DNA of 64,000 nucleotides from Blepharisma stoltei ATCC 30299 (taxonomy: Eukaryota > Protista > Ciliophora): positions 234,073-298,072 of the forward strand of contig CBFDEM010000061.1 of NCBI GenBank assembly GCA_965603825.1, in the 5' to 3' direction. The position numbers and the translations under genes were made by a program. Positions 1-63,000 of the stretch are shown piece by piece. Positions within the stretch are counted from its first letter, which is position 1; the number at the start of each line of letters is the position of its first letter. The notes below the pieces were generated by a model. That model worked only from the letters and a program-made list of their open reading frames with translations. It made no database searches and was not told the origin of the DNA.

Positions 1-3000
1 AATGCAGCTTGTGCATTCTCCATCAAATGTGGTGCATGAGTAGCATTCTTTATCCCTGCAAAGCACACATGCTAAATCGCTAACACATCCATGTACGCAG
101 CTTGTCAGGCATTGTTTGCAGCTGTCTGGATACTCATTTAATGCACAGTTACTTAAACATTGAAGACTTGAAGGGCAAGAAGCACAGCCAGTGTTGCATG
201 AAGAGGTTGCATAGTCATCTGTCTGATAAGTATAAGAGTTATATATCATTACTCTAGCTATAAACCCATAGTGTCCTGATGCTACATGATTTTCATCATT
301 TCCTATATAAAGAGTCCCTGAAATGGTATCTTTAAAATAAATTAAAGCAGAAGTGGTAATATAATTAATCAAGGTTGCGTTTATATAGAGGTTTAAAGTA
401 GTTTTGCCGTCAGTTTGAACTTGTCCTGTAAAGCTTAAAAAATTCCAATTATTAATAATACTTGAGGAGGCTGATAAAGTAGTTAATGACGAGTCTGAAA
501 AATATATAGAAAGCTGAGGGTATCCTGATGAGTCTATAATTACTTTTAAAATTTCTGATGAAGTATATTTAGTCATAAGAATCCCAGCTCCCAATGGCTT
601 AGCCCATATAGAAATTGAGAAAGATGGTGATATCATGACTGTAGAATGGATATAGTCGTTTAGGTGAAAATAATAGCCTCGCTTATAAGAAGGAATCGGG
701 TCATTTGTATCAGATCAATTAGGATAAACATTTGCGCTCACAGAGCCTATGCTAAAACTAGAAACAGTGTCAAGATGGACCTGATCTGTTAAATCAAGAC
801 TGATAGCTAAATTTGTTGAAAAATCGCAAGCATTTGTACCTGAGTTTGCAGTATACCCAGTTGGGCACTCACTTAAGCATTGTCCAGTTAAAGAAAAGAA
901 ATAAAATCCAGAAAAGCATGAGGTGCATTTTTGATAGGTTATATCAGTGCAATCTGAACATCCACTTGAGCATGCCAAGCATGAGAATCCATCTGATGAA
1001 ACTATATATCCAGAATTGCAGACACATGCATTAGGAGCTCCACTTGCATTAGTTACACATTGAGTGCATTTGCCTGAGCCAAATCCTGTGCAAATCGAGC
1101 ATAAAACATCATCACAAAGATTACATGTTCCTGATCTGACGCATCCTTTGCTGCAGGAATTGCAAGATAAGTAAGAAGATCCATCATAATAATTTGACAA
1201 ATCACAATTTCATAAGCAAGTGTCACAAAATGTAATCATATAACTGTAAAAATTATTAATAGGCACATTCCACAGCTGAAAATTATTAATAAACCCAACA
1301 AAGCCAGAAGAGCTGCTTTTCCCAATCATTAAGTTTGTTGAAGTGACGTCTCTATAAATATAATTTGAAATACTTAAGCTTTGATCCATTGAGCTAAAAT
1401 AGAAGTCTGTTATAGTTGTGGCATCAGAGGTGTATTCAAAAGTTATTGACAAATAGCTTCAGCCCCCTGAAGCCAATGTAGATGGTGCTGATAAAGCTTG
1501 AGTTGATAATGCTTGCGTAGGGTCTTCCATAACAGCTGTTATACTTCCAGTTGAAGATAAAATAAGCCTTGCTTCTTTTTCTAGTATATCACCATCAGTT
1601 ATTACATATATTCATAGCCCAATAGAAAAACTATGAGAAAGATAAACAGATATTGAGGATAATAAGTAGGTGGCCCCATTAAAATATAGACCTCTATCAT
1701 ATGCAGGAATAGGATCGACAGATTCAGGATTTGCAAAGGGCTGGTATGTGCTTGATGACGTTCCAGTGGTAAAAATTCCATAAGAACCTTGGAAATCAGT
1801 ATTCAGAGACTGATCAATCACTGGAGTTGAGACTAAAGTACAGGAAGCCCCATAGCCATATGGGCAGTCATTCAAACATATGCTCCCTACCAATTGTTTC
1901 CCTGAAATGCAAGTACTACACTCAAAATAAGTCGTTTGTGTGCATACAGAACAAAGTGCATCACATAAATCACAATTAGCTGTATTAGAGTTTCAAATAG
2001 CGCTTGTCATGCATTGGCAGCCTCCTGTTCCATCAGCTTCTGCATTAGTGATGCAGCTTGAGCAAGACCCAGAAAAAGAGGTGCACTCATAGCACTGCTC
2101 TGTTTTACATAATCTACAAGTGTTGCTATGTCTGCATCCCTTTGTACAAGTTCCCATACAATCTACACAGGCTGAACCATCGTAATATTGTGATAAAGGG
2201 CAGGTATCTGGACAATTATAATCACTAGGGCAACTCAAGCATGGAGAGGTACAACTTGATGTCGAATAGTCACTAAGTTTCAAAGTTTCTGAATTATAAA
2301 TATTTATATCATATAAAAAACCTGTGAAACCACTGTTTAAACTTGATTTTGTTCCAATATAAAGAGTTCCTAAACTGAGATCCTGAAAATAAACTTGGCT
2401 TACTGATGAGCCTGTATCTATTGGTATCGAATTAAAATATGAGCTTATTGTTGTTACATAGCCTGTATCGATTATTCCTGTAAATGCAATAAAGTTTCAG
2501 CCATTCAATACACTTGATGATAAAGCTACAGATAGTGCTGAGGAGTCGCTTAAAGTAATTGAAAGTTGAGGGTACTCAGAACTTAAAATTTCAAAGCAAA
2601 ATATTTCGCCCCCAGAAACAGTTTTAGAGACTATTGTGCCTGCAGAAGTTGGATAAATTCAAACAGAAATAGAAAAATATGGTCCAATCACTGTGTTGGT
2701 TGTGAGATAAGTAGTGCCAGTAAAATAGTATCCTCTTAAATAGGCTGGGTATGGATCGTTAGTATCATAATTCGGATAAGTGTTTGTATTAGAAGATCCA
2801 ACTGAAATTCCTGAAATTGAATCAAGCACTATTTTGTCATAAAAAATTATACTTAATCCAATATTTGAAGAAAAAACACAAGTTTTTGTATATGAGTTTT
2901 CGGTGTAACCTGTAGGACAGCTTGAAAGGCAAAAATTGCTATTATAAAAATAAGAGCTAGAGGTGCAGGAAGTGCATAAATAGTAAGATGAGCCAGTACA

Positions 3001-5055
3001 ATGAGCGCATCCCGCATAACAAGCTGAGCATAAAGCTTGATTTGCATCAGGCTGGTAAAATCCAGAATTACATGAGCATGGAGACCCAGAAGCATTAGAA
3101 ATACACGAAGTGCAAGCTCCTGACCAAAATGAGGAGCATTGAGCGCATAAAAAATCGTCACAAATATAGCAAGAGGTTCCTCTAGTACAGCCAATTGTGC
3201 AAGAGCCTAAGCATGGCTGACATACAGATCCATCATAATAGTGAGAATAGTCACACGGCCATAAAGTTGATAATGAACCTCCTGTCAGTGTATTTATGCT
3301 ATAAGAAGAAGAAAAATCGCTAATTTCAACTTGTCAAAGTATAAAATAAGCAATAAACCCGCTAAAATTTGTTGAACCTTTGCCAATATATAATACTCCT
3401 CCTGATGGCAATCTGAAAACATAATCTGTAACAGTTACTGCTGTTCCAGCTATATTATTAAGGTAAGGAATTACTGTAGTCACTTTATTGGAAAACCCGA
3501 TTGAATAAGAAATGTAGCTTCATACATTTGAAGTTATAGATTGTGAAGCTGAGTAGCTTGTAGACGTTCCATCCCACTTTTCTAAGTAAAAATTAATTCC
3601 GGTAGAACCAATATTAAGTTTATTTGAGCTATGACCTATAATTGTCCCAGAGTTAACTAGCACCCATAGGCTCATACTTCAAGTGTTAGAAAGATTTATA
3701 GACCCACTTAAATATTGGTTGGAATTGAAATAAAAACCTCTGCATTTTGCAGGGAATGGATCAGATGATTCTGGAGAATTCCAATAATTATAGCTTGAAG
3801 AACCTGTGGCAGTAGTCAAAGCTGTTCCATAGCTTCCTGCAAATGAGCCTGTAAAATCAGCAGTCAAAACGGCTGTAGAAACAGCTGTACAACTTCCGAA
3901 TCCATATGGGCATGCATATAGGCAAATTCCTCCAATTAAAACTTTTCCACTAATACATGCAGTATTTGTCCAGGTTTGGGTGCAAGTTGCACCAAAATAA
4001 TCACAGCATCCTGGAACTATTCCTGTAGTGCATGCTGTACACATTGATAAAGAGTATCCATAACAAGAACTGCAATCAGGAGAATAACAAATATCACAAC
4101 TTGAGCCTCTAACGCACCAAGGCCAAGTGGGACATCCCGAGCCACAGTTTTGGCAAGCAGACCCATCTCAATATTGATTATCAACACAATCAATAGTACT
4201 ACTCATTGTCCCATAATTTCGATTTGTATCAGATCTTGCCTGAAGTCAATAAATGAACCCTCTAAAAGAGTTTCCTCCGCTCAAATTCCCAAAAGTCCAC
4301 GTATACGTTGCTGTACCTGAAAATTTTGCTTCAGTGCTGCTTGAGGTTGTTGTTCCAACATTAGACCCATTTATATAAAAATTTATGGTTGCTTCAGAGC
4401 ATGAAGATTGATTTAGAATTATTGATGCTTGATGTCATGACGAGATATAGCTTGAAGTGCTAGCTCCAGATATAGAAATTGAGCCACTGCTTGTATTATA
4501 GACAATTGCACTAAACATATAAACACCAGAGGAATCTGTCCATATCCTTATATATGAGCTCGAGCTCAAAAGGACGTTTAAAATTTCTCCACTGTCTAAA
4601 GGCTTAATCCATAAATTTAATGTGAAATACAAAGCAGGAACATGACTTTGATTACTAGTGATACTTGAAGTCGTAGCGAAATAAAAGCCACGATCGACTG
4701 TTGGGAGAGGAGAATTTTGAGTTGCTGAATTATATGAAATTGATCCTGGATTTTCGAAGTGCTCAGAAGCAGATGTGGAACTTGCAATATATGTGGCAGT
4801 CAAATCTTGAATGTTTAAAAATTCTAGTGTGAATAAAATTGCATTGTTACTATTGGGCATGCTGCATGAATAGCCAAATCCATAATTTGCATTTGAGCCA
4901 AATAGTGAAGGGCATGAATTCACACATACTTTACTATCAGCTAGGTAGTATGAGTTTGAGCATTTGCATGTAAAATATAAATCGCTACTGTTAGATGGGC
5001 AGCAACAGTAGGTCAACAATATTTTGGTGAAAGAAACTAAAGCAAATATCATCAT
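1..5055 (-). CDS. G1: giant modular LamG-like/Cys-rich surface receptor, 3'-partial (at least 1685 aa, at least 5 modules), UGA=Trp
   Basis: Track ORFs 4435-5055, 3679-4044, 1993-2283, 1612-1893, 1210-1452 and 715-1200 share one frame and each ends in TGA where paralogs have Trp. Signal peptide MMIFALVSFTKILLTYC. RG[FLY]YF module motifs at ~4685, 3735, 2730, 1690 and 680. The frame runs off the window start. Confidence 0.88.
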
Positions 5056-6083: not shown

Positions 6084-9000
6084 TTATTTTTCGATTTTTT
6101 TATGGCTATCATTCAAAGGTTGAATACTATTTCTCATAATCCCTGCTTTGGTCAGCTTATGATGGATAACACCATACAGAGTTCTTGCAAAAATCGCGAT
6201 TGAAGAAAAAGATTGAATGATCATAACTCCTATCACAATAGCTACAATGGCGTTTTCAAATGTCGAGGTAATTTCTTGCTCTAAATTAAATAAATAAATT
6301 GATGTCGAGCTCATAACTAAGCAAATCATAATTTCAGTCAATAAATTGTTTATTTGCAAAACTGGGTCCTCAAAAGGCCAGAAAAAGATCAGATGCAAAA
6401 TAGTCATTAAGGAAAGAACAATATTTATGGTGACTTCAGTTTGCGGATATTCCCTCAAAAATACCAAATTTATTATATAGATGAATCTCCTTATAAAGAA
6501 CACGAAGTAATACTGTGTTGCAAGGAGGCCTCTATCAACTCTGAACTCATAAAAGAAGGAACTAAATAACTCTGTGAAGCTCTTTTCTCTTGACTGGATC
6601 CGATTTTTATTTTTATAAGAGAACCAGAAATATCCTGGTGGAGTTATAACTAGTAGTATATAAATTGCTAAGCATATAATAAAATTGATAATTTGTGTGA
6701 AATTGTTAAACCCAAAAGTAATTAGGCCAATACTAGCTGCAGCTCCTAGTTCAAGGTAGCACTGGATTCAAAATCTCAGATAAAATCCAAACTGATAAAC
6801 TTTTACTGTTTTCATAAACTTTTTACCAATTCACCTAAATGAGCATCGTGAAAAAAAGAAAACTACAGGCAGAGCAGTTAATGATGCAACTATTATTGTA
6901 AAATCATTGCCTTGCGTTATTAAAATCAAATCAGTATCAAACCCAAAATCTTGTGCTTGAGAATATGGAGCATTTCCTTCATTTTTATCAATTATATATA
7001 TAAAAATATTTGGAAATAAATTGAAGGAATTCAAATTATTCAAAAACGAGCTCATTTTGGATGACAGTGGAATTCCTGATAAAGTCAAGTAACTCAGAAT
7101 TTGTAAGCTGTTTATCATACTTCATAAAGAACTAGGGCTTGGATTTACAATTGATAAGGCAACAGCTCCAGAAATAGCAACTTGAACCCCAGCTGCTGCT
7201 TTAGAAGTAATTGCCTCAACTGCCGGAGAGTATGGAGCTGGATCATAAGAATTAAGTGATATAGAAATATCTGAAGAATTTAAAACGCCGTTTGATATTG
7301 ATTTTATGTCTGTTAAGTTTGAGAATTCTAAAGTAGTTAATGTGCCTTTAGATATTTCTTTAGATATAACTAGAGAAATATAATAGCAAGTGCTATTCAT
7401 CTCCTCAATTTTAAATGAAGCTTCTCCTTGTTTTTGAATTTTGATAGTAAAGTCATTTGCAGAGAGACTGTTAGCAAGGATATCTGAAAAAATAAGGTAA
7501 AGTGAATTATCTGAAAAAGCAGTCAACTTCGCTGAAAAGGGAACTAATATGCAGTTTTCAGCCCCATTGTAACCTAAATCACAATAGCATAGATCATTTT
7601 TAAGGCTGGCATTTTCTACACAAGAATTGCACTTTGTAGAGGATTCACAATAAGTGCAGAAGCTTGGACATGGATACAATTTCCCATCAGGACCTCTAAA
7701 TCCGCCTGCTTCCACAGGAATACAAGAATTGCTATTAGAAGTGTCAAGCACATAGTTTATATCACAAATACAAGAACTAGGATTGATAGCGTTTTCTATA
7801 CATTTAGAGCAGCCAGTAGATGAATAATCATTGCAAGAATCGCATAATAAATTATCGCAAAGAGAACAAGTAGACCTTCAGTCTCTGCAGGTTTCTTTGC
7901 ATTTTACGTTGCACTGATAGCATTTATTATAGGCTGGTCCAGCTCAATATTCATTTATTTTGCAATTCGGAATGCATTTTTGGTCTGTTGGGCACACACT
8001 GCAGCTTTCAGTACAAGAGGTCGTGGAAAGGCTTGACATAGACTTTAGTGAATTAAATATCTGTATACTATAAAGAAAGCCTTGATAAAAATTATAAGTT
8101 GATGATGAACTAAGCTGAGCGCCTATAGACATTATTGTGTGAGGACCTTTATCCTGGAAAATCCCATATATTGAGTTTCCGAGCGCGTCAGATAATCCAT
8201 TTATATAACAAGACAGTTTACTGTAACTGTTTTGAGTCAATTCTAATGTAAATACTACATGACTCCATTCGTAATTATTGAGAAGTCTATCAGCCATATA
8301 AAAAATTTGGAATGAGCTTAAGGTAAATGAAATCGAAATTTTGCTGCCCATCAATGAGATGGAGTAAAGCGTTGAATAACTATCAGAAATGTTATGCTTT
8401 GATAATAGAGTGCCATATGAAGTCTCAGTATTTAATCATATAGAAATCGTAAAGGTAGAGGGAATTATAAGTCTTGGTGATGCATAATTTGAATATTCTG
8501 GCATCCTTAAAATAGAAGATTTGCCGTTAAAATAAAATCCTCTTAAGTAAGCAGGTATAGGGTCATCAGGTTCATAATTTGGATAAAATTGGTTAGTTGA
8601 TCCAGTTATAACAGGAATTGAGTTTACCTTATCATAAATTACTCCATTCAGAGTATTCAGATCCAAGTCAAAAATTTTTTCTTGAACTAATACACAACTA
8701 CTTCCAGAAGGTGAATATCCTAACGGGCAGCTATTTACACAAATTCCTGATACATTATAAAATCCATTAGAGCACGTCAGACAGTCTAACGAAGTTGATG
8801 ATGCACAAGTTTTACAAGAAACATCACAAGAGCCACAGTTTTCATTGGTGCTATCCCAAAAGTATCCAGAATTGCATTGGCAACTTGCTCCGCTTAAGCT
8901 TGCATGCGTTTTGCAGGTAATGCATACACTTGTATAGTCATCACATACTTCACATAGCATATCTTGGCAGAGATTACAACTTTTATCAACTCTTGCACAG

Positions 9001-12000
9001 CCTTTAGCTAAGCATCCAGATGAGCATGTGACACAGCTGTTGCCATTTCAGTATTTATCTATATCACAACTATCCAAGCAAGTATTGGAATTATCTATTG
9101 GACATAGAGAGCACCCACTACAAGTGCTTGATGCTAAACTACTAACTGCTATTAGCGCATTATAAATTTTGAGATCTCAGAGAAATCCACTGAAAAATGA
9201 CGTTAAGATTGAAGAGCTAATATAGCCTGCTCCAATAGTCATCAAAAACGAAGCACCTAAATCACTTAGCCAGCTTGGGTCTAGATCGCTGGATGTATCG
9301 ATCATTCCATTTCTAGATAAACTAATAATTTGTTGTGGATTAGTACTTATGCCTGAGCTTGCTGATATGAAATTTCATTGAGAAAGGGCAGCTTCTAATG
9401 ATGGATTAGTACTTGTAAAAGTTTTTGTATTAGAATTTTTTAAAGTTAAAGTAAGTGAAGGGGCTTTGTTTATCAATTCCAAACTAATATGTTTTTTAAA
9501 AAGACCACTATCGGCTTGCTTGGAAAAGATTACTCCTGTATTTGAAATTGGCTTTATTCATGCTGACATAACAAATTTTGGCGAAAATGTGAGCAATGAT
9601 GAAGTGGTGCCTGCATAAGGAGGCAGCCTCATATAAGATGAACCAGAGAAATAATAACCTCTATAAATGGCTGCTATAGGATCAGTTGAATCATAATCAG
9701 GATAAAATTTGTTATCTTTGCCTGTTAATACCTGAATATTTGACTTCAAATCAGTGATGATGTCTTTTATTTGATGAGGCATCAAGTTAAATACAAAAGA
9801 ATTTGAATAATTCGGGTCTCTATCGCAGTTACCACCATTTATAATATACCCAGTAGGACAAAATGGCATGCAGAATGATTGTATTAGATAGTGGCTGGAA
9901 ATGCATGTGAGGCAGCCATTATAGTTTGGAGTTGAGCATGCAGAGCACATTGCATCGCAAAGTTCACAGCTCTCAGTATCTGAATCTCATACAGCATTTG
10001 CAACACATACACAATGATTACTTACTTTATGAGCGTTTGCAATACAACTTGTACATTCTCCTGTAAAAGTCGTGCATGATTGGCATTCTTTATCTCTGCA
10101 AAGTCTGCACGTTAAGTCACTAACGCATCCTTCGCTGCAGCCAGTCTTGCAAGTATTGCAGCTGTCTGGATACTCATTTACTGCACAGTCGCTTAAACAC
10201 TGGTGGTTTGAAGGGCAAGTAGAACAGCCAGATGTGCAAGAAGATGTTGCGTAGTCGTCAGATTTATAACTATGAGAGTTATATATCATTAATCTTCCTA
10301 AAAATCCATATAGTCCTGAAGTCCCAAAAGTTTCATCATTTCCAACATACAGCATTCCTGCATTAGTATCTTTAAAATAAGTGAAAGCTGTTGAAATGAT
10401 AGAACTTGGAGATGCTCCATTATCAATATAAAGTTTTAAAATTGATTTTCCATCATCTTGGATATTGCACGTAAAACTTAAAAAATGCCAGCTTAATGTA
10501 ATACTTGTGGAGGTAGTTAGAGTTTGGGTTGATGAGTCAGCAAACACAATTGAAAGCGCTGGAAATCCTGACGAGTTGATCTCAATTTTGAGAATCTCAG
10601 TAGTAGTAATATATTTAGTCATCAAAGTTCCATGATTTAGAGGTTTAGTTCATAGAGAAATAGTGAATGATGGAGCTATCATGACTGTAGAGGATAAATA
10701 ATCACTCATGTAAAAATAATACCCTCTTTTATAAGAAGGTATAGGATCATTCAAATCAGTTGATGTTAACCCACTATAAGTATTTGTATTAGAATTCCCT
10801 ACATTAAAGCCAGAAACGGTATCCAGCCTAACCTGGTCTGTTAAATCAAGACTAATCCCAAATTTTGACACAAAATCGCAAGTTTTTCCCCCTGTATTTT
10901 GTGTATATCCAGATGGGCACTCATCTAAGCACTGTCCAGTATTAGCAAAGAAATATCCAGAACTGCATGCTGTACATTTATTATAGGTCACAGCCAAGCA
11001 TAAAGAACACCCACTGAAGCAAGAAGCACATGATAAACCATCAGTGGATCTTCCAAACCCAGCATTGCATAGGCAAAGCCCTGACGATAAAGTTACACTG
11101 GGATCACATTGAGTGCATTTACTTGAATCAAATCCTGTGCAAGTTATGCATAATGAATCGTCACAAATATTACAAGTACTAGCTCGCCTGCATCCATAGG
11201 TACAGGAATTGCAAGCAGAGATAGCTCCATTTATATATGAAGAAATATCGCAGGCTCATAAACAAGATGCTCCCTGCCCTGATTCACAAAATGTAAAACT
11301 GCTGATAATTGCTGGAAATCCTGTAATTGCAGTATTTCATAGCTGAAAATAATAAATAAAGCCCACAAATCCAGGATTGTTGCTTTTGCCGAGTATTAGA
11401 GAGGTCAGTGCCTGGTCTCTGTAAATCATTTTTGTTAAACTGCTTGCTGAACTTGAAACTCCATTTATATAAATTGATAGGGCTGTGTTCCCTAGTGAAT
11501 ATTCAAAAGTGACTGATAGATAAGCCCACCCAGTAAATGACGAGCTAAGTGTTAATGCCTGAGAAGATGTTGCCTGAGCTGGATCTGTCATTGTAACAGC
11601 TATAGAGCCTGTAGAAGTCAGCGTTAAAAAAGTTTGTTTTTGCAATAAATCACCATTTGTAATTACATATAACCATACTCCGATTGAAAAACTATGAGAA
11701 AGATAAACAGTTGTTGAGGATAATAAATACATATTTCCATCAAAATATAAGCCTCGCTTATATGCAGGAATTGGGTCAACACTTTCAGGGCTGTTGGAAA
11801 ACTGAAAAGTCGCTGCACTTGTCCCTGTTGTAAAAATTCCATAAGACCCTTGAAAATCTTCATCAAAAGACTGATCAATCACTGTAGTCGTTACTACTGA
11901 GCAAGAAGTACTGTAAGGACACTCATCTAGACACACAGTTCCTGCTAGTTGATAGCCTCCTAGACAAGCTGAGCATTCAAAATATGCTGTTTTTAAGCAA

Positions 12001-15000
12001 GTCGAGCAAAGAGCATCACAAAGCTCACATGTTTCACTTGAAGACACTCAGAAAGCATTAGAAGCACAAGTGCAGCCTCCATTCCCATCGCTAACAGCAT
12101 TTGTAATGCAAGTTAGGCATGAATTAGCACCTGTAAACTCAGTGCATGTAGCGCATTCTTTAGTCTTGCAAAGGTTACAAGAATCAGCGTTTCTGCATCC
12201 TTTATTGCATGCACTTATGCAACTCGCACAAGGAGAGCCATCATAATATTGAGATAATGGGCAATTATCTGGGCAAGTTAAATCTATAGGACATTTTGTG
12301 CAGCTGCCTGAGCATCCAACAGTTTGTCAGTCATCCAATGCATGATTACTCTGGCAGTAAATCTTTAGTTCCCACAAAAACCCAATAAACCCACCACTGT
12401 AAAGCCCGATATAAAAGTTTCCTGTCTTGCTGTCTAACAAATAAAGTGGACTTAAAGATGTAGAAGTAGCTTGAGAAGCAGAATCAATATAAGAACTTAT
12501 TGTTGTTGTCCCGCCAGAATTAACTTTACAGTCAAATGATACAAAAACTCAGCTATTAAGCACATTTGAGGGTCCTATTACTGAAACGGTGCTTGAAGCA
12601 TCCATTAAGAGAAGTGACAGTTTTGGATACCCTGATGATAAAATTTGAACAAATCACTGGGTTGTTGATACATATTTTGTTATAACCATACCACTTGCTG
12701 TAGCCTTTATTCATAGAGATATTGAAAAATTTGGAGCAAGCATAAACATTGTAGTTAGATAACTATTGGAATTAAAATAGTAGCCTCTGAGATATGCTGG
12801 AACTGGATCATTCGAATCATAAGTAGGATAAGCATTAGAAAATGAAGATCCTACTTGCTTTCCTGACAGTTGATCAAGTAGTATTTGATTGCTAAAAGAT
12901 AAGCTAAGTGCCGTTACTGATGACAAATCACAGTTACCTGTGCCTGTATTTTTTGTATATCCTATAGGGCAATCTGGAAGACACATTTTACTGTTATAAA
13001 AAAAGGAACTAGAGCTACAGGAGGTGCATAAATAATAATATGAGCCTGTGCAATGAGCACATCCTGAATAGCAAGCTGAGCATAAAGCTTGGTTTGCGTC
13101 AGGTTGGTAAAATCCAGAATTGCAAGAGCATGGGGATCCAGAAGCATTAGGAATGCATAAAGTGCAAGCCCCCGACCAAAATGATGAGCATTCAGCACAT
13201 AAAAAATCATCACAAATATAGCAAGATGTTCCTCGAGTACAACCATTTGTGCAGGATGAATCTAAGCATGTTTTGCAGACTGATCCATCATAATAATACA
13301 AATAATCACATGACCAAAAAGCTGATACTGAGCCTCCTGTCAATGTATTGATACTATAATAAGCAGAAAAATCACTGACTGTCACCTGCCAAAGGATAAA
13401 GTAAGCTATAAATCCATTGAAATTTGGTGAGCCTTTGCCGACGTATAGCGTTCCACCGGAAGGTAGTCGGAATATATAATCTGTTACAGTTGTTGGAGTT
13501 CCAGCAATCTTGTTAAGACACGGAGTCATAGTTGAGGCTTTATTTGCAAACCCAAATGAATAGGAAATATATGTCCATGTATAAGAAGTTAAAGCCTGCG
13601 AAACTGAGTAGCTTGTAAGGGAAGATGAACCATCCCATTTTTCTAAGTAAAAAGTTGCAGCTCCACTAGAATCAATAATAAGCTTATTTGTACTATGACT
13701 AATTATTGTCCCAGATATTGCATAAACCCAGATCGCCATACTCCAAGTGTTAGACAAATTTATGGATCCGCTCAAAAATTGATTAGAGTCAAAATAAAGC
13801 CCTCTATTTTTAGCTGGCTTTGGATCAGAAGACTCTGGAGAATTCCAATAGTTATAACTCGAAGAACTTGTAGCCGTAATCAAAGCTGTTCCATAACTTC
13901 CTGCAAAGGCCCCTGTAAAATCAGCAGTTAAAACAGCTGTACTAACAGCTGCACAATTTCCAAAACCATACGGGCATGCATATAAGCAAGCATCCCCAAC
14001 CAAAAAATTTCCAGTACTACACCCTGTATTTGTCCAAGTTTGTGAGCAAGCTGTCCCTAAATAGTCACAGCAATTAGGAACTACACCTGTATTACAATTA
14101 ATGCATGTTAATGGAGGATATCCCTTGCAAGTAATACAATCAAGGACATTGCAAGTGATACAGTCGGTTCCTCTAATACACCAAGGCCAAGTTTGACAAC
14201 TTGGGCTGCAGTTTTGGCAAGAAGAGCCATCTCAATATTCGTTATCAACACAATTAATAGTAGCAGTCAAAGCAGCAGTGCTCTGAACACAATCTGCTCT
14301 TGCTTGAAGCCAATAAATAAACCCTCTGAAAGAATTTCCACTACCTGTATTTCCAATATTCCATGTATAGGTTAGCTTTGGAACCCTTACTTCAGTATTG
14401 CTGAAGTCTGTACTCCCGACATTGCTTCCATTAATGTAAAAAGAAATATTAACTGTATCGCAGTCGAGCTGATTAATAATCATGGAAGCAGTATGCCATG
14501 AAGATGTAAAGCTAGAAGTGGAAACTGCAGTTCTTGAGGCTTGACTGTTATTTGAATCGTAAACATATATTGTGAATTTATACACACCTGAGGCATCAGC
14601 CCATATCCTTATATACGAATCTGGACTAAAAATAACATTTAAAATTTCCCCATTAGCAAGAGGCTTAATTCATAAATTTAAAGTAAAATAGCACCCAGGA
14701 ATAAAACCTTTACTATTCGCGATACTTGAAGTAGTAGCAAAGTAAAAGCCACGGTCAATAGTTGGAAGTGGGGAATTTTGTGTGGGAGAACTATATGAAA
14801 TGGAGCCTGGGTTTTGGAAAATAGTAGTTGAATCAGTTGAACTCACTATCTGAGCAGCAGTTAAATCCTTGATGCTTGAAAACTGTAAATCGAAAATAAT
14901 CGCGCTTGTTCCACTTGGCGGGTAACATCAGGCAACAATACCACTTCTCTTAGCATAAGTGAATTGCGAAGGACATACATCAATACCTGTGCATACTTTG

Positions 15001-15113
15001 CCATCCTGTATCTTTGAATGAAGACAGTAAGGAAGCCCAATTATATTTCCACCATCATAAGGACAAGCGAGAGTCAACAAAAATTTGGCGATAAAAATAA
15101 GAACAGTTTTCAT
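6084..15113 (-). CDS. G2: ~3009-aa receptor-like membrane protein (signal peptide, 7 LamG-like/Cys-rich modules, stalk, ~9-TM FLC/Pkd2-like domain)
   Basis: Twelve track ORFs from 14928-15113 to 6084-6503 share one frame. Internal breaks are TGA and the terminator is TAA at 6084-6086. Length 9030 nt is 3010 codons. Module motifs at ~14745, 13800, 12780, 11750, 10720, 9655 and 8535. Confidence 0.9.
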
Positions 15114-50900: not shown

Positions 50901-52551
50901 ATGCTCCAGCTATGGGTCGAAAAATGCCTTCTTGAACTATATATGAATTTTCAGCAGAAGCATCTATATATGGAGTAATTGATGAAGATCCATCATCACG
51001 GTATTTTATTATATATGAAATATAATTCCAATTATTAAGAGATGGTGATGTTGAAGCGGAATACGCGGTATAATCACCCAAAAAATTTTGCATGCTAATT
51101 TCGATTGTTCCATCAGAATGCACTTTGAGATTTTCAGTATATGTTATATAATATCCACTGATGGGATAAATCCATGCTCCAATCGTGAATGTACGATAAA
51201 GATTTATTGTAGCTTTCAAATAAGAATTGGGAAGAAAATAAAGCCCTCTCTGCTTTGCAGGAAGTGGATCAATGCTTTCAGGGGAGTTTCAGTAGTTATA
51301 GGCAGATGAACTTTCTCCAGTAATCATAATATTATCGTAAATTCCTGCAAAGCTTTTAGTAAAATCAGCGTTAATAACAGGTGTATTTACCGGTGAATTA
51401 TTAATAAAACCATATGGTACAGCATACAAGCAAACTCCATCAATAAGAACTGTCCCTTCACTGCAGGAAGTACTATTGAATGTTGAAATACAAGTATTTG
51501 CAAGTCAATCACAACAATAAGGTAGCATTCCAGTTTTGCATCCTGTGCACATATTTTCAGCATATCCATAACACTCTGAACATTCCAATGAATAGCACCT
51601 AGAACAGTCGTCTTCGCCAGTCGAGCAAAGTCAATTTTGGCAGCCTGAATCATTATCACATTTCATACATTGGCCAAAATAGTTTAGAATGCTGCATAGA
51701 TTTGTTGTATCCAATATTCAATAATTTGAGTTCAAGCTATTTGTTGCTTCAATTCAATATAAAAATCCAAAAAAAGAATCTGAATCTGACTTTCCAATTG
51801 TCCACGTATAAGCCCCGTCAGCAAAATTTGCTATTGTACTGCCCCATTTTGAAGTTCACCTATCAATATTATTTCTAGATACCGTTATATTTACTACATC
51901 ACAATCTATTTGATTAATTTGGATTGATATATATTGCCAATTGCTATCAATGATATCACTGCTTACGCTTATTTGATTTTCAATGTTGATTGCACTTTTT
52001 GCTAAAATTTTAAAAGTAAAAATATCTGAATTATATATTAGTTCTATGTAATTTTTTGAGTCTAAATTTGCAGTCAATATCTGTCCAGTCGAAATAGGTA
52101 AAATTCATGCATTTGATGTAAAATAGAGTGCTGGAATGTAGTTCTGATTGCTAGTCATAGATGAAGTTGAGCTAAAATAAAACCCACGATTTCTTGTTGG
52201 AAATGGTGACGTTTTGGTGTCTAAGCTGTAAGGAGTTCCTAATGGATTAGCCCATTTATCAGTTGGATCGATCTTATTCGCTATATAAGTTGCTGATAGA
52301 TCCTCTATTTTTCAAAATTCAAGCTCGAATAATGCAGGGGAAGTTGGCATCGAACATCCTGTACATGAATCTTCTTGAACTGAGTCGCATACTTTTCTAA
52401 AGTGAGTTGGACAAACATTGGCACAAATTTTATTATCAATCAGCAAAGTATTAATCATATCATTGCATGCACCAGTATCCGTAAACGACTGGCACTGTGA
52501 AAAAGCTAGCAATATATTGGAGAAAAATAACAAAAGGAATTGCAATTTCAT
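47977..52551 (-). CDS. G7: ~1524-aa paralog, 3 modules plus ~9-TM domain
   Basis: Eight co-framed ORFs with TGA breaks and TAA at 47977-47979. Signal peptide MKLQFLLLFFSNILLAFSQC. Module motifs at ~52180, 51240 and 50240. Confidence 0.9.
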
Positions 52552-52651
52552 CTTTAAATTCTTAAATAATTATATTTCACTATCAAGAATATAAAAAGCT
52601 TAATAAGCAAGCATGTGTATTTATTTTGTTATAAAAATTTAGTAAATATAC

Positions 52652-55600
52652 TTAAATCGTTTCTGAAAACTCTTCAATAGGGTGAACTTTTAATTTAGAA
52701 TTTCCATATGGATTTAATTTACCACCAAAAAGTTGATAAATAGTTCTTGCAAAAATCGAGATTGAAGTGCAAAACTGTACCCCTATTACCATTATAGATG
52801 TGAAAATTATAAAGTTTTCCATATCTGATATCATGCTTGAGCTTAAATCAAATAAATAAAAAGAAGTTGCACACATAATTATTGAGATCATAATTTCACT
52901 AGCTAAATTCGAAATCTGAATAATTTTATCTTTATAAGGCCAATACGCAATTAAATAAAATATACTGATCAAGGAGCATATAATATTTATTGAAACTTGC
53001 GTCCTTGGGTAATCACTCAGGAACACCAAATTAGTCGAGTATATAAGTCTCCTCAAGAAGTAAACAAAATAGTAAAGAGAATAGAGAAATCCTTTTTCAG
53101 TCCGAAATTCATAAAAAAAGGAGTCAAATAGTGAAAAGAATGTTTTAGACTTTGATTGAATTTTTACTCGATTTCTATAAGAAAACCAAAAAAATGCAAA
53201 AGGGGAAGCTGTATATAATGAAATAATCCCAAAGCAAATAATAATATTTGTTATTTGAGTAAAATTTTGGATTTTGAACATTTTTAGCCCTACATATGCA
53301 GCAGTTCCAAGCTCAAGGAAGCATTGTATCCAGAATCTTATATAGAAAGCATATTTATAATTTTGGTACATTTTTTGAAATTTTTTTCCAACCATTCTGT
53401 AAGAACAATTAGCTAAATATAATACTAATGGAATAAAAAGTACTGAGGCAGCTGCTATAGAAAAATCATCACCTTGGTTTAATAAGATTAAATCAGTATT
53501 GTATCCAAAATTTATAGCATTATCATAAGCTTTGCTTCCCTCTTTTTCATTTATTAAATATTCAAAAACATTTGGAAAAAGGCTAAATGAATTTAAATTT
53601 GATAAGAATTTATTCATTTTTTCTGAAAAAGGAATTCCTGATAATGATAAATAACTGAGAATTTGTAAGCAGCTTAAAAAGCTTCATAGTGAGCTTGGAT
53701 TTGGATTTACAAATGATGCAGCTATAGATCCAATAACTGCACCTTGCACAGCTGAAGATATTTGTGAAGTAATTTCAGTCATAGCTAAGCTATAAGAAGC
53801 TGGGTCATATTTATTAAGCCTAGAGCTAATTGTTGAGGAGCTCAAAATCCCATTATAAATTGACTTTACTTTTGTCAAATCAAAAAATGTGATATTTATT
53901 ATTGTATATTCTTCTATTTTTTCATTAAATATTGTTTGAATACTGTAGTAGGTTGTATTTACCAGTTCAAGGCTTCAGCTAAATTTTGGATCATTCTCAA
54001 TAGAAATTTTAAAACTGTCATTTGAAAGTGCATATTGCAAAGGATCTGAGAAATCAAGAGATAAAGAATCATTAGAAAAAATTAAGAGATCGACAGAAAA
54101 TGGGACATATTTGCACGCTGTGGTTCCATTGTAGCCACTATTACACGCACAAGAATTATTTTGAACTGAAGCATTTGGTTTGCATGCTTTACATCCATTT
54201 GATGAACTATTGCAAGTATCACATAAAAGATCTGTGCAAAAAGAACAAGAATTACCTAATCGATTTTCAACACACAAAAAGCAAGATTTAGAGTCAAATG
54301 ATGAGCATTTCAAGCAGAGCTCGCTATCACAAATATTGCATGAGTCTGCTCTCACGCAGCCATTTTGGCATGAATCTAAACATTTTTTGAAAGAACTTCC
54401 ATCATAGAAGGAATTAAAATCACAACTTCACAAATCCAATGCTCCTGCATTATTATTGAAATAACCTCGATAAGACTGAAAACTTGAAATAGCGATTTGT
54501 CACAACTGAAAAAGACTTATAAATCCATTAAAATCAGCTGATCCAAGATAAAGAGATCCGCCTGCTTCAGGTCTGAAAATCCCTTCTTGCACAAAATATG
54601 GATTTGTAATGTCAGTTTCTATATATGGAGATATTGATGAAGTTCCATTAAAACGGTATTCAATTGAATAGGAAATATAGTTTCATTTTTGAAGATTTGA
54701 CGATATTGAAGTGGAATACGTTTTGCTACTTCCAGCAAAATTTGGCATGCAGATCTCAATTGTCCCGTTAGAATGCACTTTCAGCTGATTCCCAGTATAT
54801 GTTATATAATATCCACTGATGGGATAAACCCATGCTCCAATCGTGAATGTATGATAAAGATTTATTGTAGCTTTCAAATAAGAATTGGGGATAAAATAAA
54901 GCCCTCTCTGTTTTGCAGGTAATGGATCAATGCTTTCAGGGGAGTTTCAGTAGTTATAGGTAGATGAACTTTCTCCAGTAACCAATATGCTATCGTAAAT
55001 TCCTGCAAAGCTATTAGTAAAATCAGCATTAATAACAGGAGTATTTACTGGCAAATTATTAACAAAGCCATATGGGATTGCATACAAGCAAACTTCATTA
55101 ATGAGAACTGTACCTATACTGCAGGTAATACTATTAAAAGTTGAAGAGCAAGAACTTGCTAATCAGTCACAACAAGATGGCTCCTTTCCACTTGTACATT
55201 TTGAGCACATATTTTGAGAGTATCCATAACACTTTGGGCATTGGTCTGAGTAGCACTTAGTGCAGTCATCCTCGCCAGGCATGCATAGTGAGGATGGAGG
55301 ATCGCAGTGTCCTGATTCATCACATACTATACAATTGTTATCATAAAGTATATGAATAATTAAATTAAGTTCTATATCATCGACTTTAATTCTTAATAGG
55401 CTAAAACCTTTCCCCACACAAATTAATGCACTTATATTTTATTTTACTCTTCACTCATCAAAATTATTGCAAGGTAGTCTAATATTGCATAATTGTGAAA
55501 AATCTGGGGATCAATGATAGTGATATAAAACATTTCATCCTTTAATTCAATATAAAAATCCATTGAAAGAAGTTTCATCTGATTTTCCGATTGTCCAATT

Positions 55601-56341
55601 ATATACTTTATTCGGAAACCTTGCTTCATAGCCATGCTCAAAAAGGTTTGGAATACTACCCGGATCTTCATTTATTGCAATAACCAATTTAATTGTATCA
55701 GAATCTATTTGATTAATTTGAATTAACACATATTGCCAAACACTATCAGCTATAGAGGTAATTTTTGGCATATCGCTATCACGATGTGGCGTTTTTGCCA
55801 GTATATTGAAAGCAAAGTAGTGATCATCAAGCACTAATTCTATATAGTTTGTTGATTCAGCCCTTACAGTCAAAATCTTTCCAGGGGTTATTGCTGTAAT
55901 CCATAGAGCTGCTGTGAAATAAAGAGATGGGATATAGGGTTGGTTGCTGGCGATTGATGAACTTGAAGTAAAATAAAATCCACGGCTCCTAGTAGGTAAT
56001 GGAGATGTATTCGTTGGAGAATTGTAAGGAACTAAAAATGGATTTTCTCAATTATCAGCAGAGTTGATTGAGCTCGTTATAGAAGTTTGAGATAGATTTT
56101 GGATCATCCAAAATTTAAGCTCAAATAGCTCAGCATTGGAGCTCGGTAAATTGCACAATTGTCCTTTATCTCGGTCTACATCTTGGATAAATTGTGAAGG
56201 ACATACTTCGCCACAAATTTTATCATCAATTCAGTAATCATTAGTCCCATCATTGCACATTACATCGGCACCTACCCCTGAATATAGCACAAAAGTCAAC
56301 AATATATTGTTGACAAAAAACAAAAAGTTAAGAAAATCCAT
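52652..56341 (-). CDS. G8: 2-module paralog plus ~9-TM domain (~1185 aa if the 132-bp insertion at 55352-55483 is removed; otherwise truncated by an in-frame TAA at 55439-55441)
   Basis: ATG 56341 (MDFLNFLFFVNNILLTFV, missed by the track because of an early TGA) is in frame with ORFs 55547-55873, 55163-55417, 54683-54877, 53975-54355, 53684-53878 and 52652-53617. The one non-TGA stop found lies inside the insertion. Confidence 0.82.
55351..55484. mobile_element. Candidate retained internal eliminated sequence (IES), 132 bp, TA-bounded within an ATAT direct repeat
   Basis: ATAT at 55350-55353 and at 55482-55485. Excision gives TGC AAT ATA CTT TAT GAT = LCNILYDNNC, matching G7 LCSILNYFGQC. The insert is AT-rich, has no counterpart in the paralogs and contains an in-frame TAA. 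Confidence 0.7.
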
Positions 56342-57132
56342 TATAAACTCTTAAAAAATTAATTAAACTTTAGCTGTTTGCATTTAACGCAGGAATAAGG
56401 ATAATTTATTAATTATTTGGAAGGTTAAGCTTGCTAATAAAAGATAGTTAATTAATAATCAGACTGGCAATATTGGATAAATCAATATTATATTTTTTCA
56501 ACTCAGAAATTTTTTTACTGATTCCTTCTAAAACAAAATTGAATTACCGATTTCATGAGATCAAATTGTTTTACTTATATATTTAATTTAATTTTTACAA
56601 CAAATATGTGCACAAAAGAAATCGAGCAAATACGATTTTTCATGAAGGAGACACCTAAATTTAGATCTTAAAATCTGAACATGTAATTTATGCAGTATAA
56701 ATTTTATAAGAAAAGTCCGGCTTACCAGGAGTAATATCAATTAAATTATATATGTCATATAAGATATGGAATGCCAATAAAATAATAAGATAAGAAGTGG
56801 AAAATTTAGCTCAAAAGCAAAAACAAAATCTAAAACCAAAAACCAAAAGAAATGACTTTAAACTGTAAATTAATACACTTACACCATCCCTATTTTTTAC
56901 CTACATAAAAAGTTAATTTTTTCATAGCAGCTTATAGATAGATGGGATCATAAAGATGGTATGTAATAAAAAAGAGAAAAAGCAACAGAAAAGCCTTATT
57001 CTAAAGCAACGTTAAAAAGGCTATTATAAGGAACAAAGAATTTAAATTAGCACAAAGCTTTACTTAATTTCCCAAATATGAAAATAATTTTATTTACTAG
57101 CTAACTTTTTGCCTGCGCTTCATTGCTACAAA

Positions 57133-60100
57133 TTAAGCAATCTTTTTTATAATTCCTGATTTTTTAAGTTTATAGTAAATCACTTGATATAAATACCTTG
57201 AAAATATTGCTACTGATGATACAAATTGGACAATTATTGCCAAAAAGACACTTAGAATAATAGCATTCTCTACCCCTGTCACAATATCTTGCTCTAAATT
57301 AAATAAATATACAGACGTTGCACACATTACAATTAAAACAAGTATTTCTGTCAATAAATTGTTGATTTGTAATATAAGGTCTTCAAATGGTCAATAGAAA
57401 ATTAAATGAAGGACTGTTACTAAAGAAAGAACAATATTAATGGTGACTTCTGATTCTGGATAATTTCTCAAGAAAACCAAGCTTACAATATAAATAAATC
57501 TCCTTGAAAAAAATACAAAATAAAATTGTGTTCCGAGCAAGCCTTTGTCGCTTCGAAATTCGTAATAAAAAGTGCTAAATAAGGCAAATAAAGATTTTTC
57601 ACGTGATTGAATACGATTTTTATTTTTGTAAGAAAACAAATAATAGAGAGGTGGGGTGAAAACCAATAGTAAAAACACAAATGTGCATAAAATAATATTT
57701 ATGCATTGAGTAAAATTATGATTACTGAATGTGGAAATTCCTATACTAGCTGCTGCTCCTAATTCAAGATAGCATTGTATTCAAAACCTTAGATAAAAAG
57801 AGTATTTATAAGCTCTCATTGATTTTTTAAATTTTTTACCGAGCCACCTATATGAGCATCTAGAAAATAGAAAAACTGCAGGAAATGCAAATATGGAGGC
57901 CAGAATAAGTGTAAAATCATCTCCTTGATTTAATAGGATCAGATCAGTATCAAATCCAAAGCTTTTCGCTTGAGAATATGGAATTGTCCCTTCCTTTTCT
58001 TTTATAAAATAAGAAAAAGCATTTGGAAATAGACTAAACGAATTCAGATCATTTAAAAATGCACTCATTTTACTAGAGATCGGAATACCAGACAAAGTTA
58101 AGTAGCTGAGAATCTGCAAGGTATTCATCATGCTCCACAAAGAGCTTGGACTTAGACTCATAATTGATAAGGCAGCTGCTGTTGAAACAATTGCTAGAGT
58201 TCCAGTTGTCGTTTGAGATCTAATTCCTTCTATAGTTGATGAATAAGGTGCTGGATCATAATAATTAAGAGAAACTGAAATTTCAGACGTGTTTAAAATT
58301 CCATTCGAAACGGATCTTAACTCAGCCAAGTTCAAAAATTCAAGAGTAGCTGATGTACCTTTAGGGATTATTTCTTCTAAATCTAATGTAATATAATAGC
58401 TTGTATCATTCACCTGCTCAATTTTTCATGAAACATCATACTTTTTAATTGTTATGATAAAGTCAGAGGCTGTGAGATTATTTGCTAGAGTATCAGAAAA
58501 AGATAGATATAAAGAATTGTCGCTTAAAACTGTAAGCTTTGCTCAAAAAGAAACTAAAGTGCAATTGCTTATACCGTTATAGCCAATATTACAATAGCAT
58601 AAGTCATTATATAGGCTTGCATTATCTACGCAAGCTGTACATTTAATTTGAGATTCACACGAAATACATAAGTTTGGACATGAATAAAACTTTCCATCAG
58701 GACCTTTGTATCCACCAGATTGAATTTGTACGCAAGTGCTATTAGTAGAACCATCCAATACAAAATTTGTATCGCATATACATGAATCAGGGTTGATTGC
58801 ATTTATTTTACAAGTTTCACACCCTGTTTCTGAGTAATTTGTACAAATTTCACATAATAAATTATCACATAGAGAGCAAGTTGATCTTCAATTCCTACAG
58901 CTTTTCTTACACTTTATATTACACTGATAGCATGAATTATAGCTTGGGCCGCTCCAATACTCATTTATTTTGCAATTAGGAATACATATTTGATTTGTAG
59001 GACAAACCCCACAGCTTTCAGTGCAGGCTGTAGTTGATAATTTTGATATAGGCTTGACTCCATTAAATATTTGAATTATATAAATAAATCCTTGGTGAAA
59101 ATTATATAATGAATCTGATGAGATTTGAGCTCCAATTGTCATTGCAGTGTTAGAGCTTCTATCTTGAAAATATCCATAATTGACTATCGCAGATGAATCA
59201 AAATTACCTTTTATATAGCAAGAAGCCATGCTATTCCCATCTGTAGTTATTTCTAAAGTAAATGACACGTGATTTCATTCATTATTTTTAAGTGCAGTCT
59301 GACATGTATAAGCAATTGCAGATGAGCTAATAATGATAGATAGCGCTGGCTTACTATTCATTAAATATACCGCTCATAGTGTTGATAAATTATTGGAGAT
59401 GTCATTTTTTGAAATAATTGTAGAGAATGAAGTTTCAGTATTTAATCATATAGAAATTGTAAAAATAGGTGCAATTACAAGCTTTGGAGATATATAGCTT
59501 GAGTATTCAGGTAGTCTTAAAATTGAAGATCAGCCATTAAAGTAAAATCCTCTTAAATAGGCTGGGATGGGGTCATCATTTTCATAATTCGGGTAGAATT
59601 GTTTAGTTGAGCCGGTTATAACTGGAATTGAGTTTGCTTTATCATAAATTACTCCTTCTAATGTGTTTAAGTCTAAGTCAAAAATCTTTTCTTGAGTCTG
59701 CACGCATTTAGTTCCTGATCGAGAATATCCTTGTGGACAACTCGCCAAACAAATTCCTGAAACCAGATATAATCCATTAGCACAAGCTAAGCAATCTAAA
59801 TATTTCGATGATGTGCAGGATTTGCAAGAAGCATCGCACGCATCACAGCTTTCATTATCAATATTCCAGTAAAAACCAACATTGCACTGGCAGCTTGAGC
59901 CAATTAAACTTGCATTTGATTTGCAGGTAATGCATGTGCTTGTATAATCATCACATAGTTCGCAAACAACATCTTGGCAATGATTGCAGCTCTTGTCCTT
60001 TCTTACGCAGCCAGAGTTTGAGCATCCTGATAAGCAAGAAGCACAACTATTACCATTTCAAAAACTTCCTATCAGACAATTATCTAAGCAAATATTGGAA

Positions 60101-63000
60101 TTGTCATTAGGACATAATGAGCATCCATTGCAAGATCCTTCAGTCAAGATTGGGATAGCTAATGTGTTATATATTTTCATATCTCATAGAAAACCATTGA
60201 AAAATGAGCTAAAATGTGTTGAGTCAAGGTGACGTGCTCCAATCGATATAAAAAATGAGCTTTCTAAGTCTTCCAATCAGCTATCACCTAAATCGCTTGA
60301 AATATCGCTAAAAGAGTTCATTGTAAAGCTAATTGTTTGCTCGGGAGTAGAACTTATTCCAGAAGTAGCAGAAATAAATACTCACTGTGCAAGAGTAACT
60401 TGCAATGATGCATTAGTGCCTATATAAGTAACAGTTGAGGAATCTTTGAGAGTTAAAGTGAGTGATGGGTATTTATTAATTAGTTCAAAACTTACATATT
60501 TAGTAAATGCTCCATTATCAGTTTGCTTGCAAAAAATAACCCCTGTTCCAGATATTGGCTTTATTCAGGTTGCAATTGCAAATTGAGGAGAAAAAGTAAG
60601 TAAAGGAGATGGAGTGCTTAAATAAGGAGGAAGCTGCATATAAGAAGTTCCAGTGAAATAATAACCTCTATATATAGCTGCATAAGGGTCAGTTATTCCA
60701 TAGTTTGGGTAAAATGTATTATCTTTTCCGGTAAGAACAGGGATATTATTTTGTAAATCATTTACAATGTTTTTTATTTGATGTGGCTTTAAATTAAAAA
60801 CGAAGCCACTATAGTTCATATCTATCTCGCAAATATTATTATTCAAAATATATCCAGTTGGACAAAAGAGAGAGCATATATTTTGAAGCATAAAGTAGCC
60901 AGATATGCAAGAGGTGCATTGCGTATAAAATCCTCCACTACAATCTACGCACAAATTATAGCACTGGGAGCATAAAGCTTGCCCAGAAGGTTGAAAAAAC
61001 CCACTATCACAATCGCATGTGCTGTTTGATGCATGCGGTATACACAAAGTGCAAGAATTAGATGAAAATGATGAGCATTTCTGGCATTTATCAGTTTCAC
61101 AGATATTGCATGAATTTGCTCTTACGCATCCATTTTGACAAGATATCAAGCATTGCTCGCAAGATGCCCCATCAAAATAATAATCATAATCGCAATTTCA
61201 TAAACACTCAACATCTGTTCCTATATTGCAATTATAATAATTTAGAGCATTTGTGAAATCAGTTATAGTGACCCCTCATAGTTGAAAATAACTTATAAAA
61301 CCATTAAAATCTCCTGTTCCAAGATATAAATAGCCTCCAGAAAATGGTCTAAAAATATGATCGCTTGTAGAACTGGCTGCAGCATGAGCATTATTTAGAT
61401 ATGGAGTAACTGTAGACACTCCATTTGAAAATCCAAAAGAATAAGAAATATAACTTCATTGCCATAAAGGTGTTGCCATAGAAGATGTTAACAGCTGGAT
61501 TGATCCATCATATTTTTGCATATAAGTCTGAAAAAAACCATTTGAATTCAGTAGAAAATTGCTATAGCTATGCCCTATTCAGCTTCCACTAATTAAGTAA
61601 ACTCATGCGCCAAAACTTAAAGTAGGTGATAGATCAATTTGCCCTTTTAGATAAGTGAACCCAATAAAATAAAGTCCTCTCCATTTTGCTGGAAATGGAT
61701 CGAAGATTTCTGGAGAATTTCAAAAATTATAGCTTAAAGGATCAGATCCAGTAACAAAAACGTTATCATAAATTCCTGCAAAATCATCAGTAAAATCTAT
61801 CGTAATTACAGGAGTAGATACAGGAGAGCAATTTCCAAAGCCATAAGGACATCCATATAGGCAAATCCCGTTAATAGGACTTATACCATTAGTGCATGAA
61901 GTGCTTTGCCAAGTAGAAGTGCAAGCACTGGCTAGCATATCACAACAATATGGCAAAGATCCTGTGGTGCATGATGTGCACATAGATGCAGAATATCCGG
62001 TGCAAGATCCACAACTTACCGTATTGCAAGTGCTGCAGCTGTCACCTCTTATACATCAAGGCCAGCTAGGACAAGCTGAACTACAATTTTGACAAGAAGT
62101 TCCATCCCAATACTGCTTATTTTTGCATTCTAATTTAGCTGTCATTGTAGCATAATTAATAGTTAAATCGTTTCTCGCTTCCATCCAATATAAAAACCCT
62201 TTAAAAGAATCTGGAGCATCTCCTCCAACTAGCTTTCCAATTTTTCATATATTTTTATCAGTTTGGTCTACTGGAAAATTTGCTTCATAATTATAAAAAG
62301 TAGTCACAACTGGGTTTGAGTTTATATATATTTTTAAATTTACTTGATTGCAAGATGCTTGCTCAAGCTGAAATGACACTGTTTGTCAAGCAGAAGTATA
62401 TGGATCGCTATAAGCTGTTACTTTAGTCTCGCCAGAATCGTTAGAGTTTTGCAAAATCACTTTTAGAACAAAAGTAGTTGCCTCTGCTACGCATTCAATA
62501 TAATATCCAGAATTATAATAAAAGGTTAAAATTTGACCCGAACTTAAAGGGTGAATCCATATATTTGCTGTAAAATAAAGTGCTGCAATATATCCTGGAG
62601 TACGTGATAGAGATGAAGCTGAATCGAAATAAAAGCCACGATCTACGGTAGGAAGAGGGGCATTTTTTGAACTAGAACCAAAAAGGGTTCCTCCAGGTGT
62701 ATTGAAATGCTGTCCAGGACTAATCAAATTTGAGATATAAGTTGCAGTCAAATCCTGAGCTGCTGAAAAATCAAGTTGGAATAGAATTGGAGAAGTTGGT
62801 AGGCTGCATGCCGTGCAAACAGTAGTTCCTGTTGTTGTACAGACTGGAGTGAATTTAGAAGGACAAATTTCTGCACAGACCTTCCCATCTATCATTAAGC
62901 TATAATTAGCATCAACACACGAGCCAGAAATACTATTTTTAGGGCATGCGGAATAGGTAAACAATAAAAAGGAGACGAAATTAAGCACTAATAATTTCAT
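57133..63000 (-). CDS. G9: ~1955-aa paralog, 4 modules plus ~9-TM domain (telomere-proximal)
   Basis: Nine co-framed ORFs with TGA breaks and TAA at 57133-57135. Signal peptide MKLLVLNFVSFLLFTYSAC. Module motifs at ~62635, 61675, 60660 and 59540. Confidence 0.9.

Follow-up and report, generated by a model that had tools for sequence, protein, structure and literature searches.

The right end of macronuclear contig 61 (C61) of the ciliate Blepharisma stoltei, the 64,000-nucleotide window analysed here (C61:234073-298072 of a 298,072-bp contig), holds nine giant membrane-protein genes, all on the minus strand, which fill 89% of its non-telomeric DNA. The array is real, larger than first noted, and partly known. 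Complete genes encode three to nine laminin G (LamG)-like modules, an immunoglobulin (Ig)-like domain and nine transmembrane helices. The family is best explained as a Blepharisma-specific tandem expansion of heterotrich nine-helix surface receptors of the PF06011 type. By its predicted structure, the family adds a novel form to the nine-helix proteins of PF06011 type, and is not a polycystin or TRP channel.

Recognizing these genes depends on the genetic code. The B. stoltei ATCC 30299 macronuclear assembly has CCCTAACA telomeres, and UGA specifies tryptophan (PMC9942806). Translation with TGA as Trp yields ten long minus-strand open reading frames (ORFs), which constitute the nine genes. Table 4 is indeed needed for long ORFs, as the preliminary description of this DNA had it: with the standard code, no ORF in the window exceeds 506 amino acids (aa). 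Moreover, where Trp is invariant in the membrane domain the codon may be either TGA or TGG (15 TGA/8 TGG and 8 TGA/15 TGG), which confirms the reading internally. (Bacterial-code ORF tools, and readings with TAR as Gln, yielded fragments only.) Close homologs of the window genes carry B. stoltei protein names in databases, and the window ends in a telomere (63202..64000, no strand assigned) composed of (TTAGGGTG)n, an 8-bp repeat that is a permutation of the Blepharisma unit.

The membrane unit provides the family's identity. The protein encoded by g6 (36290..47227, minus strand; P0008, 3645 aa, nine modules plus the Ig-like domain and nine helices) was the source of the sequence for both AlphaFold models. 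The model of its last 483 residues (predicted local distance difference test, pLDDT, 93.3; predicted template-modelling score, pTM, 0.84) comprises a seven-strand Ig-like domain that runs directly into nine long helices, followed by a short tail. Over its whole length the model matches best with fungal FLC proteins grouped in one Atlas cluster, at a TM-score of 0.73 across 428 residues; 98% of that cluster carries PF06011 and 67% carries PF14558. PF06011 was matched in 15 of 94 relatives, one of which (P0030, 29.2 bits) lies above the Pfam gathering cut-off of 28.5. These results uphold the FLC/Pkd2-type membrane domain proposed at the outset. The published Schizosaccharomyces pombe Pkd2 model has the same arrangement, an Ig-like domain on nine helices. 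Nevertheless, the Blepharisma proteins differ from fungal FLC and Pkd2 in four respects: an added 1,000-3,100 residues of LamG/Cys ectodomain (three to nine modules before the Ig-like domain); a short tail, as against 135 aa in the fungal protein; no match to PF14558 (ML-like TRP_N), either in the window's proteins or in the 94 relatives; and about 80 copies rather than a few. The quoted membrane motifs, nine predicted helices and short tails are all present in the window proteins, and the cytoplasmic tail is too short for an enzyme domain. The "stalk" of the preliminary description exists as a segment, but it is an Ig-like sandwich of about 100 aa.

The label "polycystin/TRP-like" fares less well. 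No TRP or polycystin-2 chain appears among the top structural matches, and the unit has nine helices as against a six-helix subunit plus pore loop. Human polycystins cannot replace the fungal Pkd2 membrane domain. GPS (PF01825) and REJ (PF02010) are absent from the Pfam scans of P0008 and P0009; an Ig sandwich, not a GAIN/GPS element, precedes helix 1. "TRP-like" is a Pfam label, not a shown fold. The likeness to animal polycystin-1 and adhesion G-protein-coupled receptors (GPCRs) is conceptual, a long modular ectodomain on a multipass unit; no REJ, GPS, PLAT or TRP pore fold was detected in the window proteins. (One distant relative, P0032, does combine the nine-helix unit with REJ, PKD and GPS domains, so that an ectodomain of polycystin-1 type stands on an FLC-type base.)

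Among solved structures, a Foldseek search of the PDB with the membrane-unit model found nothing significant. A PDB sequence search likewise found nothing significant; its MscS matches (E 0.16-0.4) were rejected. A wider structural aligner scored Z 9.9 against Ig domains of S-layer proteins and Z 7-9.7 against seven-helix rhodopsins and class C GPCRs. These last, the best solved matches to the membrane part, align about 180-200 residues, and for helical bundles a Z below about 13 may reflect a common arrangement. They invite the view that the bundle hides a GPCR-like seven-helix core, or else that it is a lipid or flavin carrier, possibly intracellular. Transport was the original proposal for fungal FLC, but the giant lectin rods speak against anything so simple as a carrier. 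For the GPCR-like version, the relevant parallel is CRMPa, which has been called GPCR-like (PMC9670195), set against the shortness of the cytoplasmic tails. Taken as a whole this view is very doubtful.

Four polar residues are conserved in the membrane unit among the 94 relatives: R258 (97%), E334 (91%), R354 (100%) and E405 (95%). Along with the fold match to FLC/Pkd2, they would suit the receptor-channel of the preliminary description, a tethered mechanosensitive Ca2+ channel in which the nine-helix unit conducts ions as S. pombe Pkd2 does and the ectodomain acts as a lever of graded length. Reconstituted Pkd2 passes Ca2+ on stretch (PMC9727806), and the Stentor mechanoreceptor offers a vacancy for such a molecule. 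However, no solved channel is among the structural matches, the superfamily's channel evidence comes from few experiments, and 33 paralogs with divergent LamG domains exceed the needs of a force sensor. We regard this type of channel as unlikely.

The ectodomain is a rod of LamG domains spaced by CxxC repeats. Pfam searches of stop-free pieces were mostly blank, and full-length proteins were required: the full-length g6 product matches Laminin_G_3 (PF13385) in seven stretches (E 1.2e-45). No EGF or ephrin-like domains were matched in the full-length proteins scanned. The AlphaFold model of one g6 module (pLDDT 92.9) is a concanavalin A (ConA)-type β-sandwich, similar to a sugar-bound arabinanase domain (Z 18.3), CBM40 (15.6), pentraxin (13.7) and neurexin/laminin G domains (11-12). 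The suggested LamG/pentraxin-like β domain is therefore well founded, both by the PF13385 match and by Z values of 11-18 to ConA-superfamily structures. (Matches to the binding-domain folds of botulinum and tetanus toxins, at 11-20% identity, reflect the shared ConA-type fold only and carry no toxin implication.) A repeat-profile search finds modules spaced by about 340 aa, as the preliminary description stated. Its range of two to nine repeats becomes three to nine in complete genes, the "two" being the downstream piece of the interrupted gene g8/g9. Its motif DP.P..RG has zero matches as written; the true spacing is DPxPxxxRG.

The modules fall into classes along the rod. A tree of 122 modules (a quick tree, with support from the Shimodaira-Hasegawa-like approximate likelihood-ratio test only) sorts them by position: first (N), alternating internal (E and O), penultimate (P) and last (L). 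The resulting grammar is N-(E-O)n-P-L. Between close paralogs, one in-frame block of 682-726 aa (about 685 aa, equal to two modules) is present or missing, and identity varies along the alignments. This is the pattern expected of unequal crossing-over and conversion, through which two-module blocks would be gained and lost. Some copies are broken, indicating birth and death of genes.

Selection is uneven along the protein. Among close paralogs, the ratio of nonsynonymous to synonymous substitution rates (dN/dS) is relaxed in internal LamG domains (0.30-0.66), as against 0.17-0.29 in the Cys repeats and 0.13-0.31 in the membrane unit, where an outlier of 0.82 comes from one pair with few changes. 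Pairwise comparison in 15-residue windows found no clear excess. The diversifying recognition envisaged in the preliminary description thus holds for module number but not for positive selection. Length is variable; hypervariable binding sites lack support from pairwise dN/dS.

Mostly purifying selection, together with several broken copies, would also fit a structural or protective coat, or an adhesin like Trypanosoma cruzi DGF-1, with the membrane unit mainly an anchor and the copies products of near-neutral tandem duplication. DGF-1 is equally giant and multicopy, has 8-9 C-terminal helices, and has no known function (PMC9967923); it is often subtelomeric. DGF-1_C clusters appeared as language-model look-alikes of the Blepharisma unit (scores 0.86 and 0.89; leads only), and the B. 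stoltei genome contains other clustered membrane families. Yet the DGF-1 ectodomain is of another type, so that the resemblance is one of features and a lead only, and no DGF-1_C Pfam match was found among the 94 relatives. Moreover, an anchor would hardly require nine conserved helices with invariant charged residues, and expression is apparently low for a coat, although this last point is weak. A coat or adhesin is rather improbable.

The array extends well beyond the window. Searching the genome (41.46 Mb, 64 contigs) for the membrane domain gave 87 matches, representing about 82 loci as a lower bound; 33 of the loci lie on C61, spread between 12 kb and 293 kb. Further clusters lie on C6, C63, C29, C43 and other contigs. 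Across the 262 kb of C61 that was read (loci in C61:200001-234072 being counted from search matches), the family occupies 81% of the sequence, in both orientations. Telomere repeats lie at either end of C61, with none internal within the part read. The term "subtelomeric" therefore means little here: the roughly 33 loci span a whole 298-kb telomere-to-telomere contig; Blepharisma macronuclear telomeres are added at many internal sites throughout; and the assembly may have broken at clusters of this sort that lie at contig ends (PMC9942806).

A profile search gathered 1,386 clusters at 50% identity. Among 20 clusters looked up, those with names come from Blepharisma and Stentor coeruleus, and the remainder are metagenomic or transcriptomic; homolog searches by words recovered hardly anything outside Blepharisma. 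The Stentor protein SteCoe_8686 carries five modules, and its gene has one similar neighbour and unrelated flanking genes; a metagenome contig carries a single copy of the homolog. A FastTree phylogeny built on membrane domains unites the 23 C61 copies it included (support 97) within a Blepharisma group (99). This nesting makes the big array a lineage-specific expansion, built on an architecture that heterotrichs already had. Elsewhere among the relatives, the nine-helix unit bears malectin, PA14, TIG, REJ plus GPS and, weakly, H-lectin domains, and Atlas clusters place ephrin-receptor-like repeats on it. As to genomic setting, the five-module homolog has a cyclic-nucleotide-gated channel gene on one side and a PLAC8 gene on the other, both in S. 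coeruleus and in the metagenome contig, an instance of conserved synteny.

The family has been seen before. The preliminary description supposed that annotation would miss the array, but full-length proteins are already in GenBank, and the supplement to the genome paper lists clustered membrane-protein orthogroups, including OG0000019, with a seven-helix C-terminal domain, a Laminin_G_3 series and, in some members, malectin (PMC9942806). Matched by description rather than gene identifier, OG0000019 is almost certainly this family: it too is clustered, with central Laminin_G_3 and a C-terminal multipass domain, and relatives with malectin and LamG were also found here. The two accounts differ in that the earlier one gives seven helices and no family or function, whereas the present one gives nine helices, an Ig-like domain, the FLC/Pkd2 fold and the module grammar. 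The cluster had thus been recorded before, as an orthogroup unassigned to any known family. In the literature covered, which included few subscription journals, no paper linked the Blepharisma family to PF06011, FLC or CRMPs, and neither the module grammar with gain and loss of module pairs nor a Blepharisma-specific clade with smaller Stentor counterparts was found.

For function, the alveolate CRMPs are the best precedent. Tetrahymena and Toxoplasma CRMPs are required for triggered exocytosis (PMC9670195); apicomplexan CRMPs have nine helices, and CRMPs are proposed to work as nine-helix heterodimers (PMC9815656). Like the Blepharisma proteins, TgCRMPa/b, PfCRMP1-4 and TtCRMP1/2 have a giant Cys-rich ectodomain with putative binding domains, joined in apicomplexans to nine helices. 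Unlike them, the CRMPs bear domains of EGF/ephrin-like, Kringle or MAR type; those of Tetrahymena have a GAIN domain and five predicted helices. CRMPs are also of low copy number, with no LamG arrays reported, and the Blepharisma juxtamembrane domain is Ig-like rather than two EGF-like domains.

By this analogy, we lean toward contact or glycan receptors coupled, in CRMP-like fashion, to Ca2+ or exocytosis. That the proteins are receptors is likely; what follows downstream of binding is guesswork. Hydrophobic N-termini are present, in keeping with the signal peptides first described, and a signal-like N-terminus would deliver to the surface a protein with a rod of three to nine ConA/LamG domains, an Ig-like domain and the nine-helix unit. 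The rod may attach to prey, predators or partner cells through their glycans or proteins, or may bear tension. The membrane unit, alone or as a CRMP-like heterodimer, might then convert binding or load to Ca2+ entry, an output suggested by the stretch-evoked Ca2+ flux of Pkd2; alternatively, its signal might trigger exocytosis locally or evoke a motor response.

Several points weigh against such receptors. A ConA fold need not bind sugar, and many LamG domains bind proteins. In close paralogs, dN/dS is below 1 in every region by pairwise tests, giving no sign of ligand-driven selection. The FLC match has predicted models on both sides, and no window protein scores high enough for PF06011 (best E 0.003; 16.9 bits against a cut-off of 28.5). 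CRMP homology was judged by eye only, from short motifs that look alike in the last helices of the TgCRMP cores. Finally, RNA support is thin and comes from a single study, for which the label "RNA" is a tool's guess.

Nine co-oriented paralogs do nearly fill the window, as the preliminary description reported: seven are intact (1524-3645 aa), one is cut by the window edge and one is interrupted. The window coordinates of these genes, and of the insertion in one of them, are all on the minus strand. The cut gene, g1 (1..5055), is an N-terminal part with at least five LamG/Cys modules; its membrane domain (C61:230164-231600) falls outside, some 3-4 kb before the window begins. Each intact gene ends in the Ig-like domain and nine helices. 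Besides g6, these are g2 (6084..15113; 3009 aa, seven modules, N E O E O P L), g3 (16461..24305; 2614 aa, six, N E O E O L), g4 (24720..29483; 1587 aa, three, N E L), g5 (30916..35511; 1531 aa, three, N E L), g7 (47977..52551; 1524 aa, three, N E L) and g10 (57133..63000; 1955 aa, four, N E P L). The ATG of g10 is only 200 bp from the telomere.

The interrupted three-module paralog, g8/g9 (52652..56341), encodes a signal peptide and first module, an in-frame TAA (55441-55439), and then, with frame unchanged, two modules, the Ig-like domain and nine helices. The stop lies in an AT-rich insertion (55353..55484), for which a TA-bounded reading of 132 bp is best by comparison with g7, although many alternative boundaries are compatible. 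Possibly it is a retained internally eliminated sequence. Two RNA-like contigs extend 25-32 nt into it, ending at 55452-55459, so the insertion is at least partly retained; the contigs contain no joints that would fix its boundaries. The gene is probably a pseudogene, or the source of a short secreted piece. Short, low-depth contigs from four runs of one study, guessed to be RNA, lie over g7 and g8/g9, and none lies over the intergenic interval 56319-56900 in the same runs. They fit low transcription, and fall short of full-length transcripts.

Elsewhere on C61, several family copies are frameshifted or truncated (79152-86566, 136261-141112, 163590-167758 and 182468-191526); sequence errors or small introns may account for some. 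Two broken copies are annotated in GenBank as fragments of 530 and 582 aa (P0001 and P0002). The GenBank contig CAJZBQ010000061.1 (393,583 bp versus 298,072) was considered as a second strain with more copies and rejected: it is 99-100% identical with insertions, and the extra inserts sit inside genes (compared at C61 128-147 kb). Presumably it is the same contig with germline sequences restored, and so lends no independent support to the frameshifts. At 105836, 127764, 142250, 148550 and 176623 is a subgroup in which an N-terminus of about 230 aa, with no Pfam match, replaces the usual first module; four members share about 92% DNA identity, and with a dN/dS of 0.86 this N-terminus may be decayed or fast-evolving. 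Non-family genes (1752-34013, 44758-47418 and 87594-96370) include repeated TPR proteins, two DEAD-box helicase copies, a copine, an aldo-keto reductase and a repeated family that matches nothing clearly in Pfam. Most copies on C6, C12, C29, C40 and C63 have the membrane domain interrupted by one or two in-frame TAG codons, which probably mark tiny introns. Such codons are missing from intact C61 copies, and introns may have been lost at the root of the C61 clade. The longest B. stoltei member seen, P0013 (4941 aa, 13 modules), is on another contig.

Ciliate receptors for touch, predators, prey and mates are largely unknown, and the machinery behind the habituating mechanoreceptor current of Stentor is undefined. 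A broader proposal, itself doubtful, envisages a heterotrich receptor repertoire built on the FLC/Pkd2-CRMP unit, its lectin rods encoded in a dedicated genomic block and retuned in reach and specificity by gain and loss of module pairs, that would couple contact with a predator, prey, mate or gamone glycoprotein directly to Ca2+ entry. If true, it would give candidates for the heterotrich mechanoreceptor or contact receptor, and would join fungal FLC, CRMPs and DGF-1 as one superfamily. The earlier cluster description and the absence of positive selection temper the finding. Nonetheless, the nine-helix unit, for which no solved structure was found, emerges as a modular signalling base across many protists, and the FLC/Pkd2-type placement turns a family already noted into concrete candidates with a shared knockdown target.

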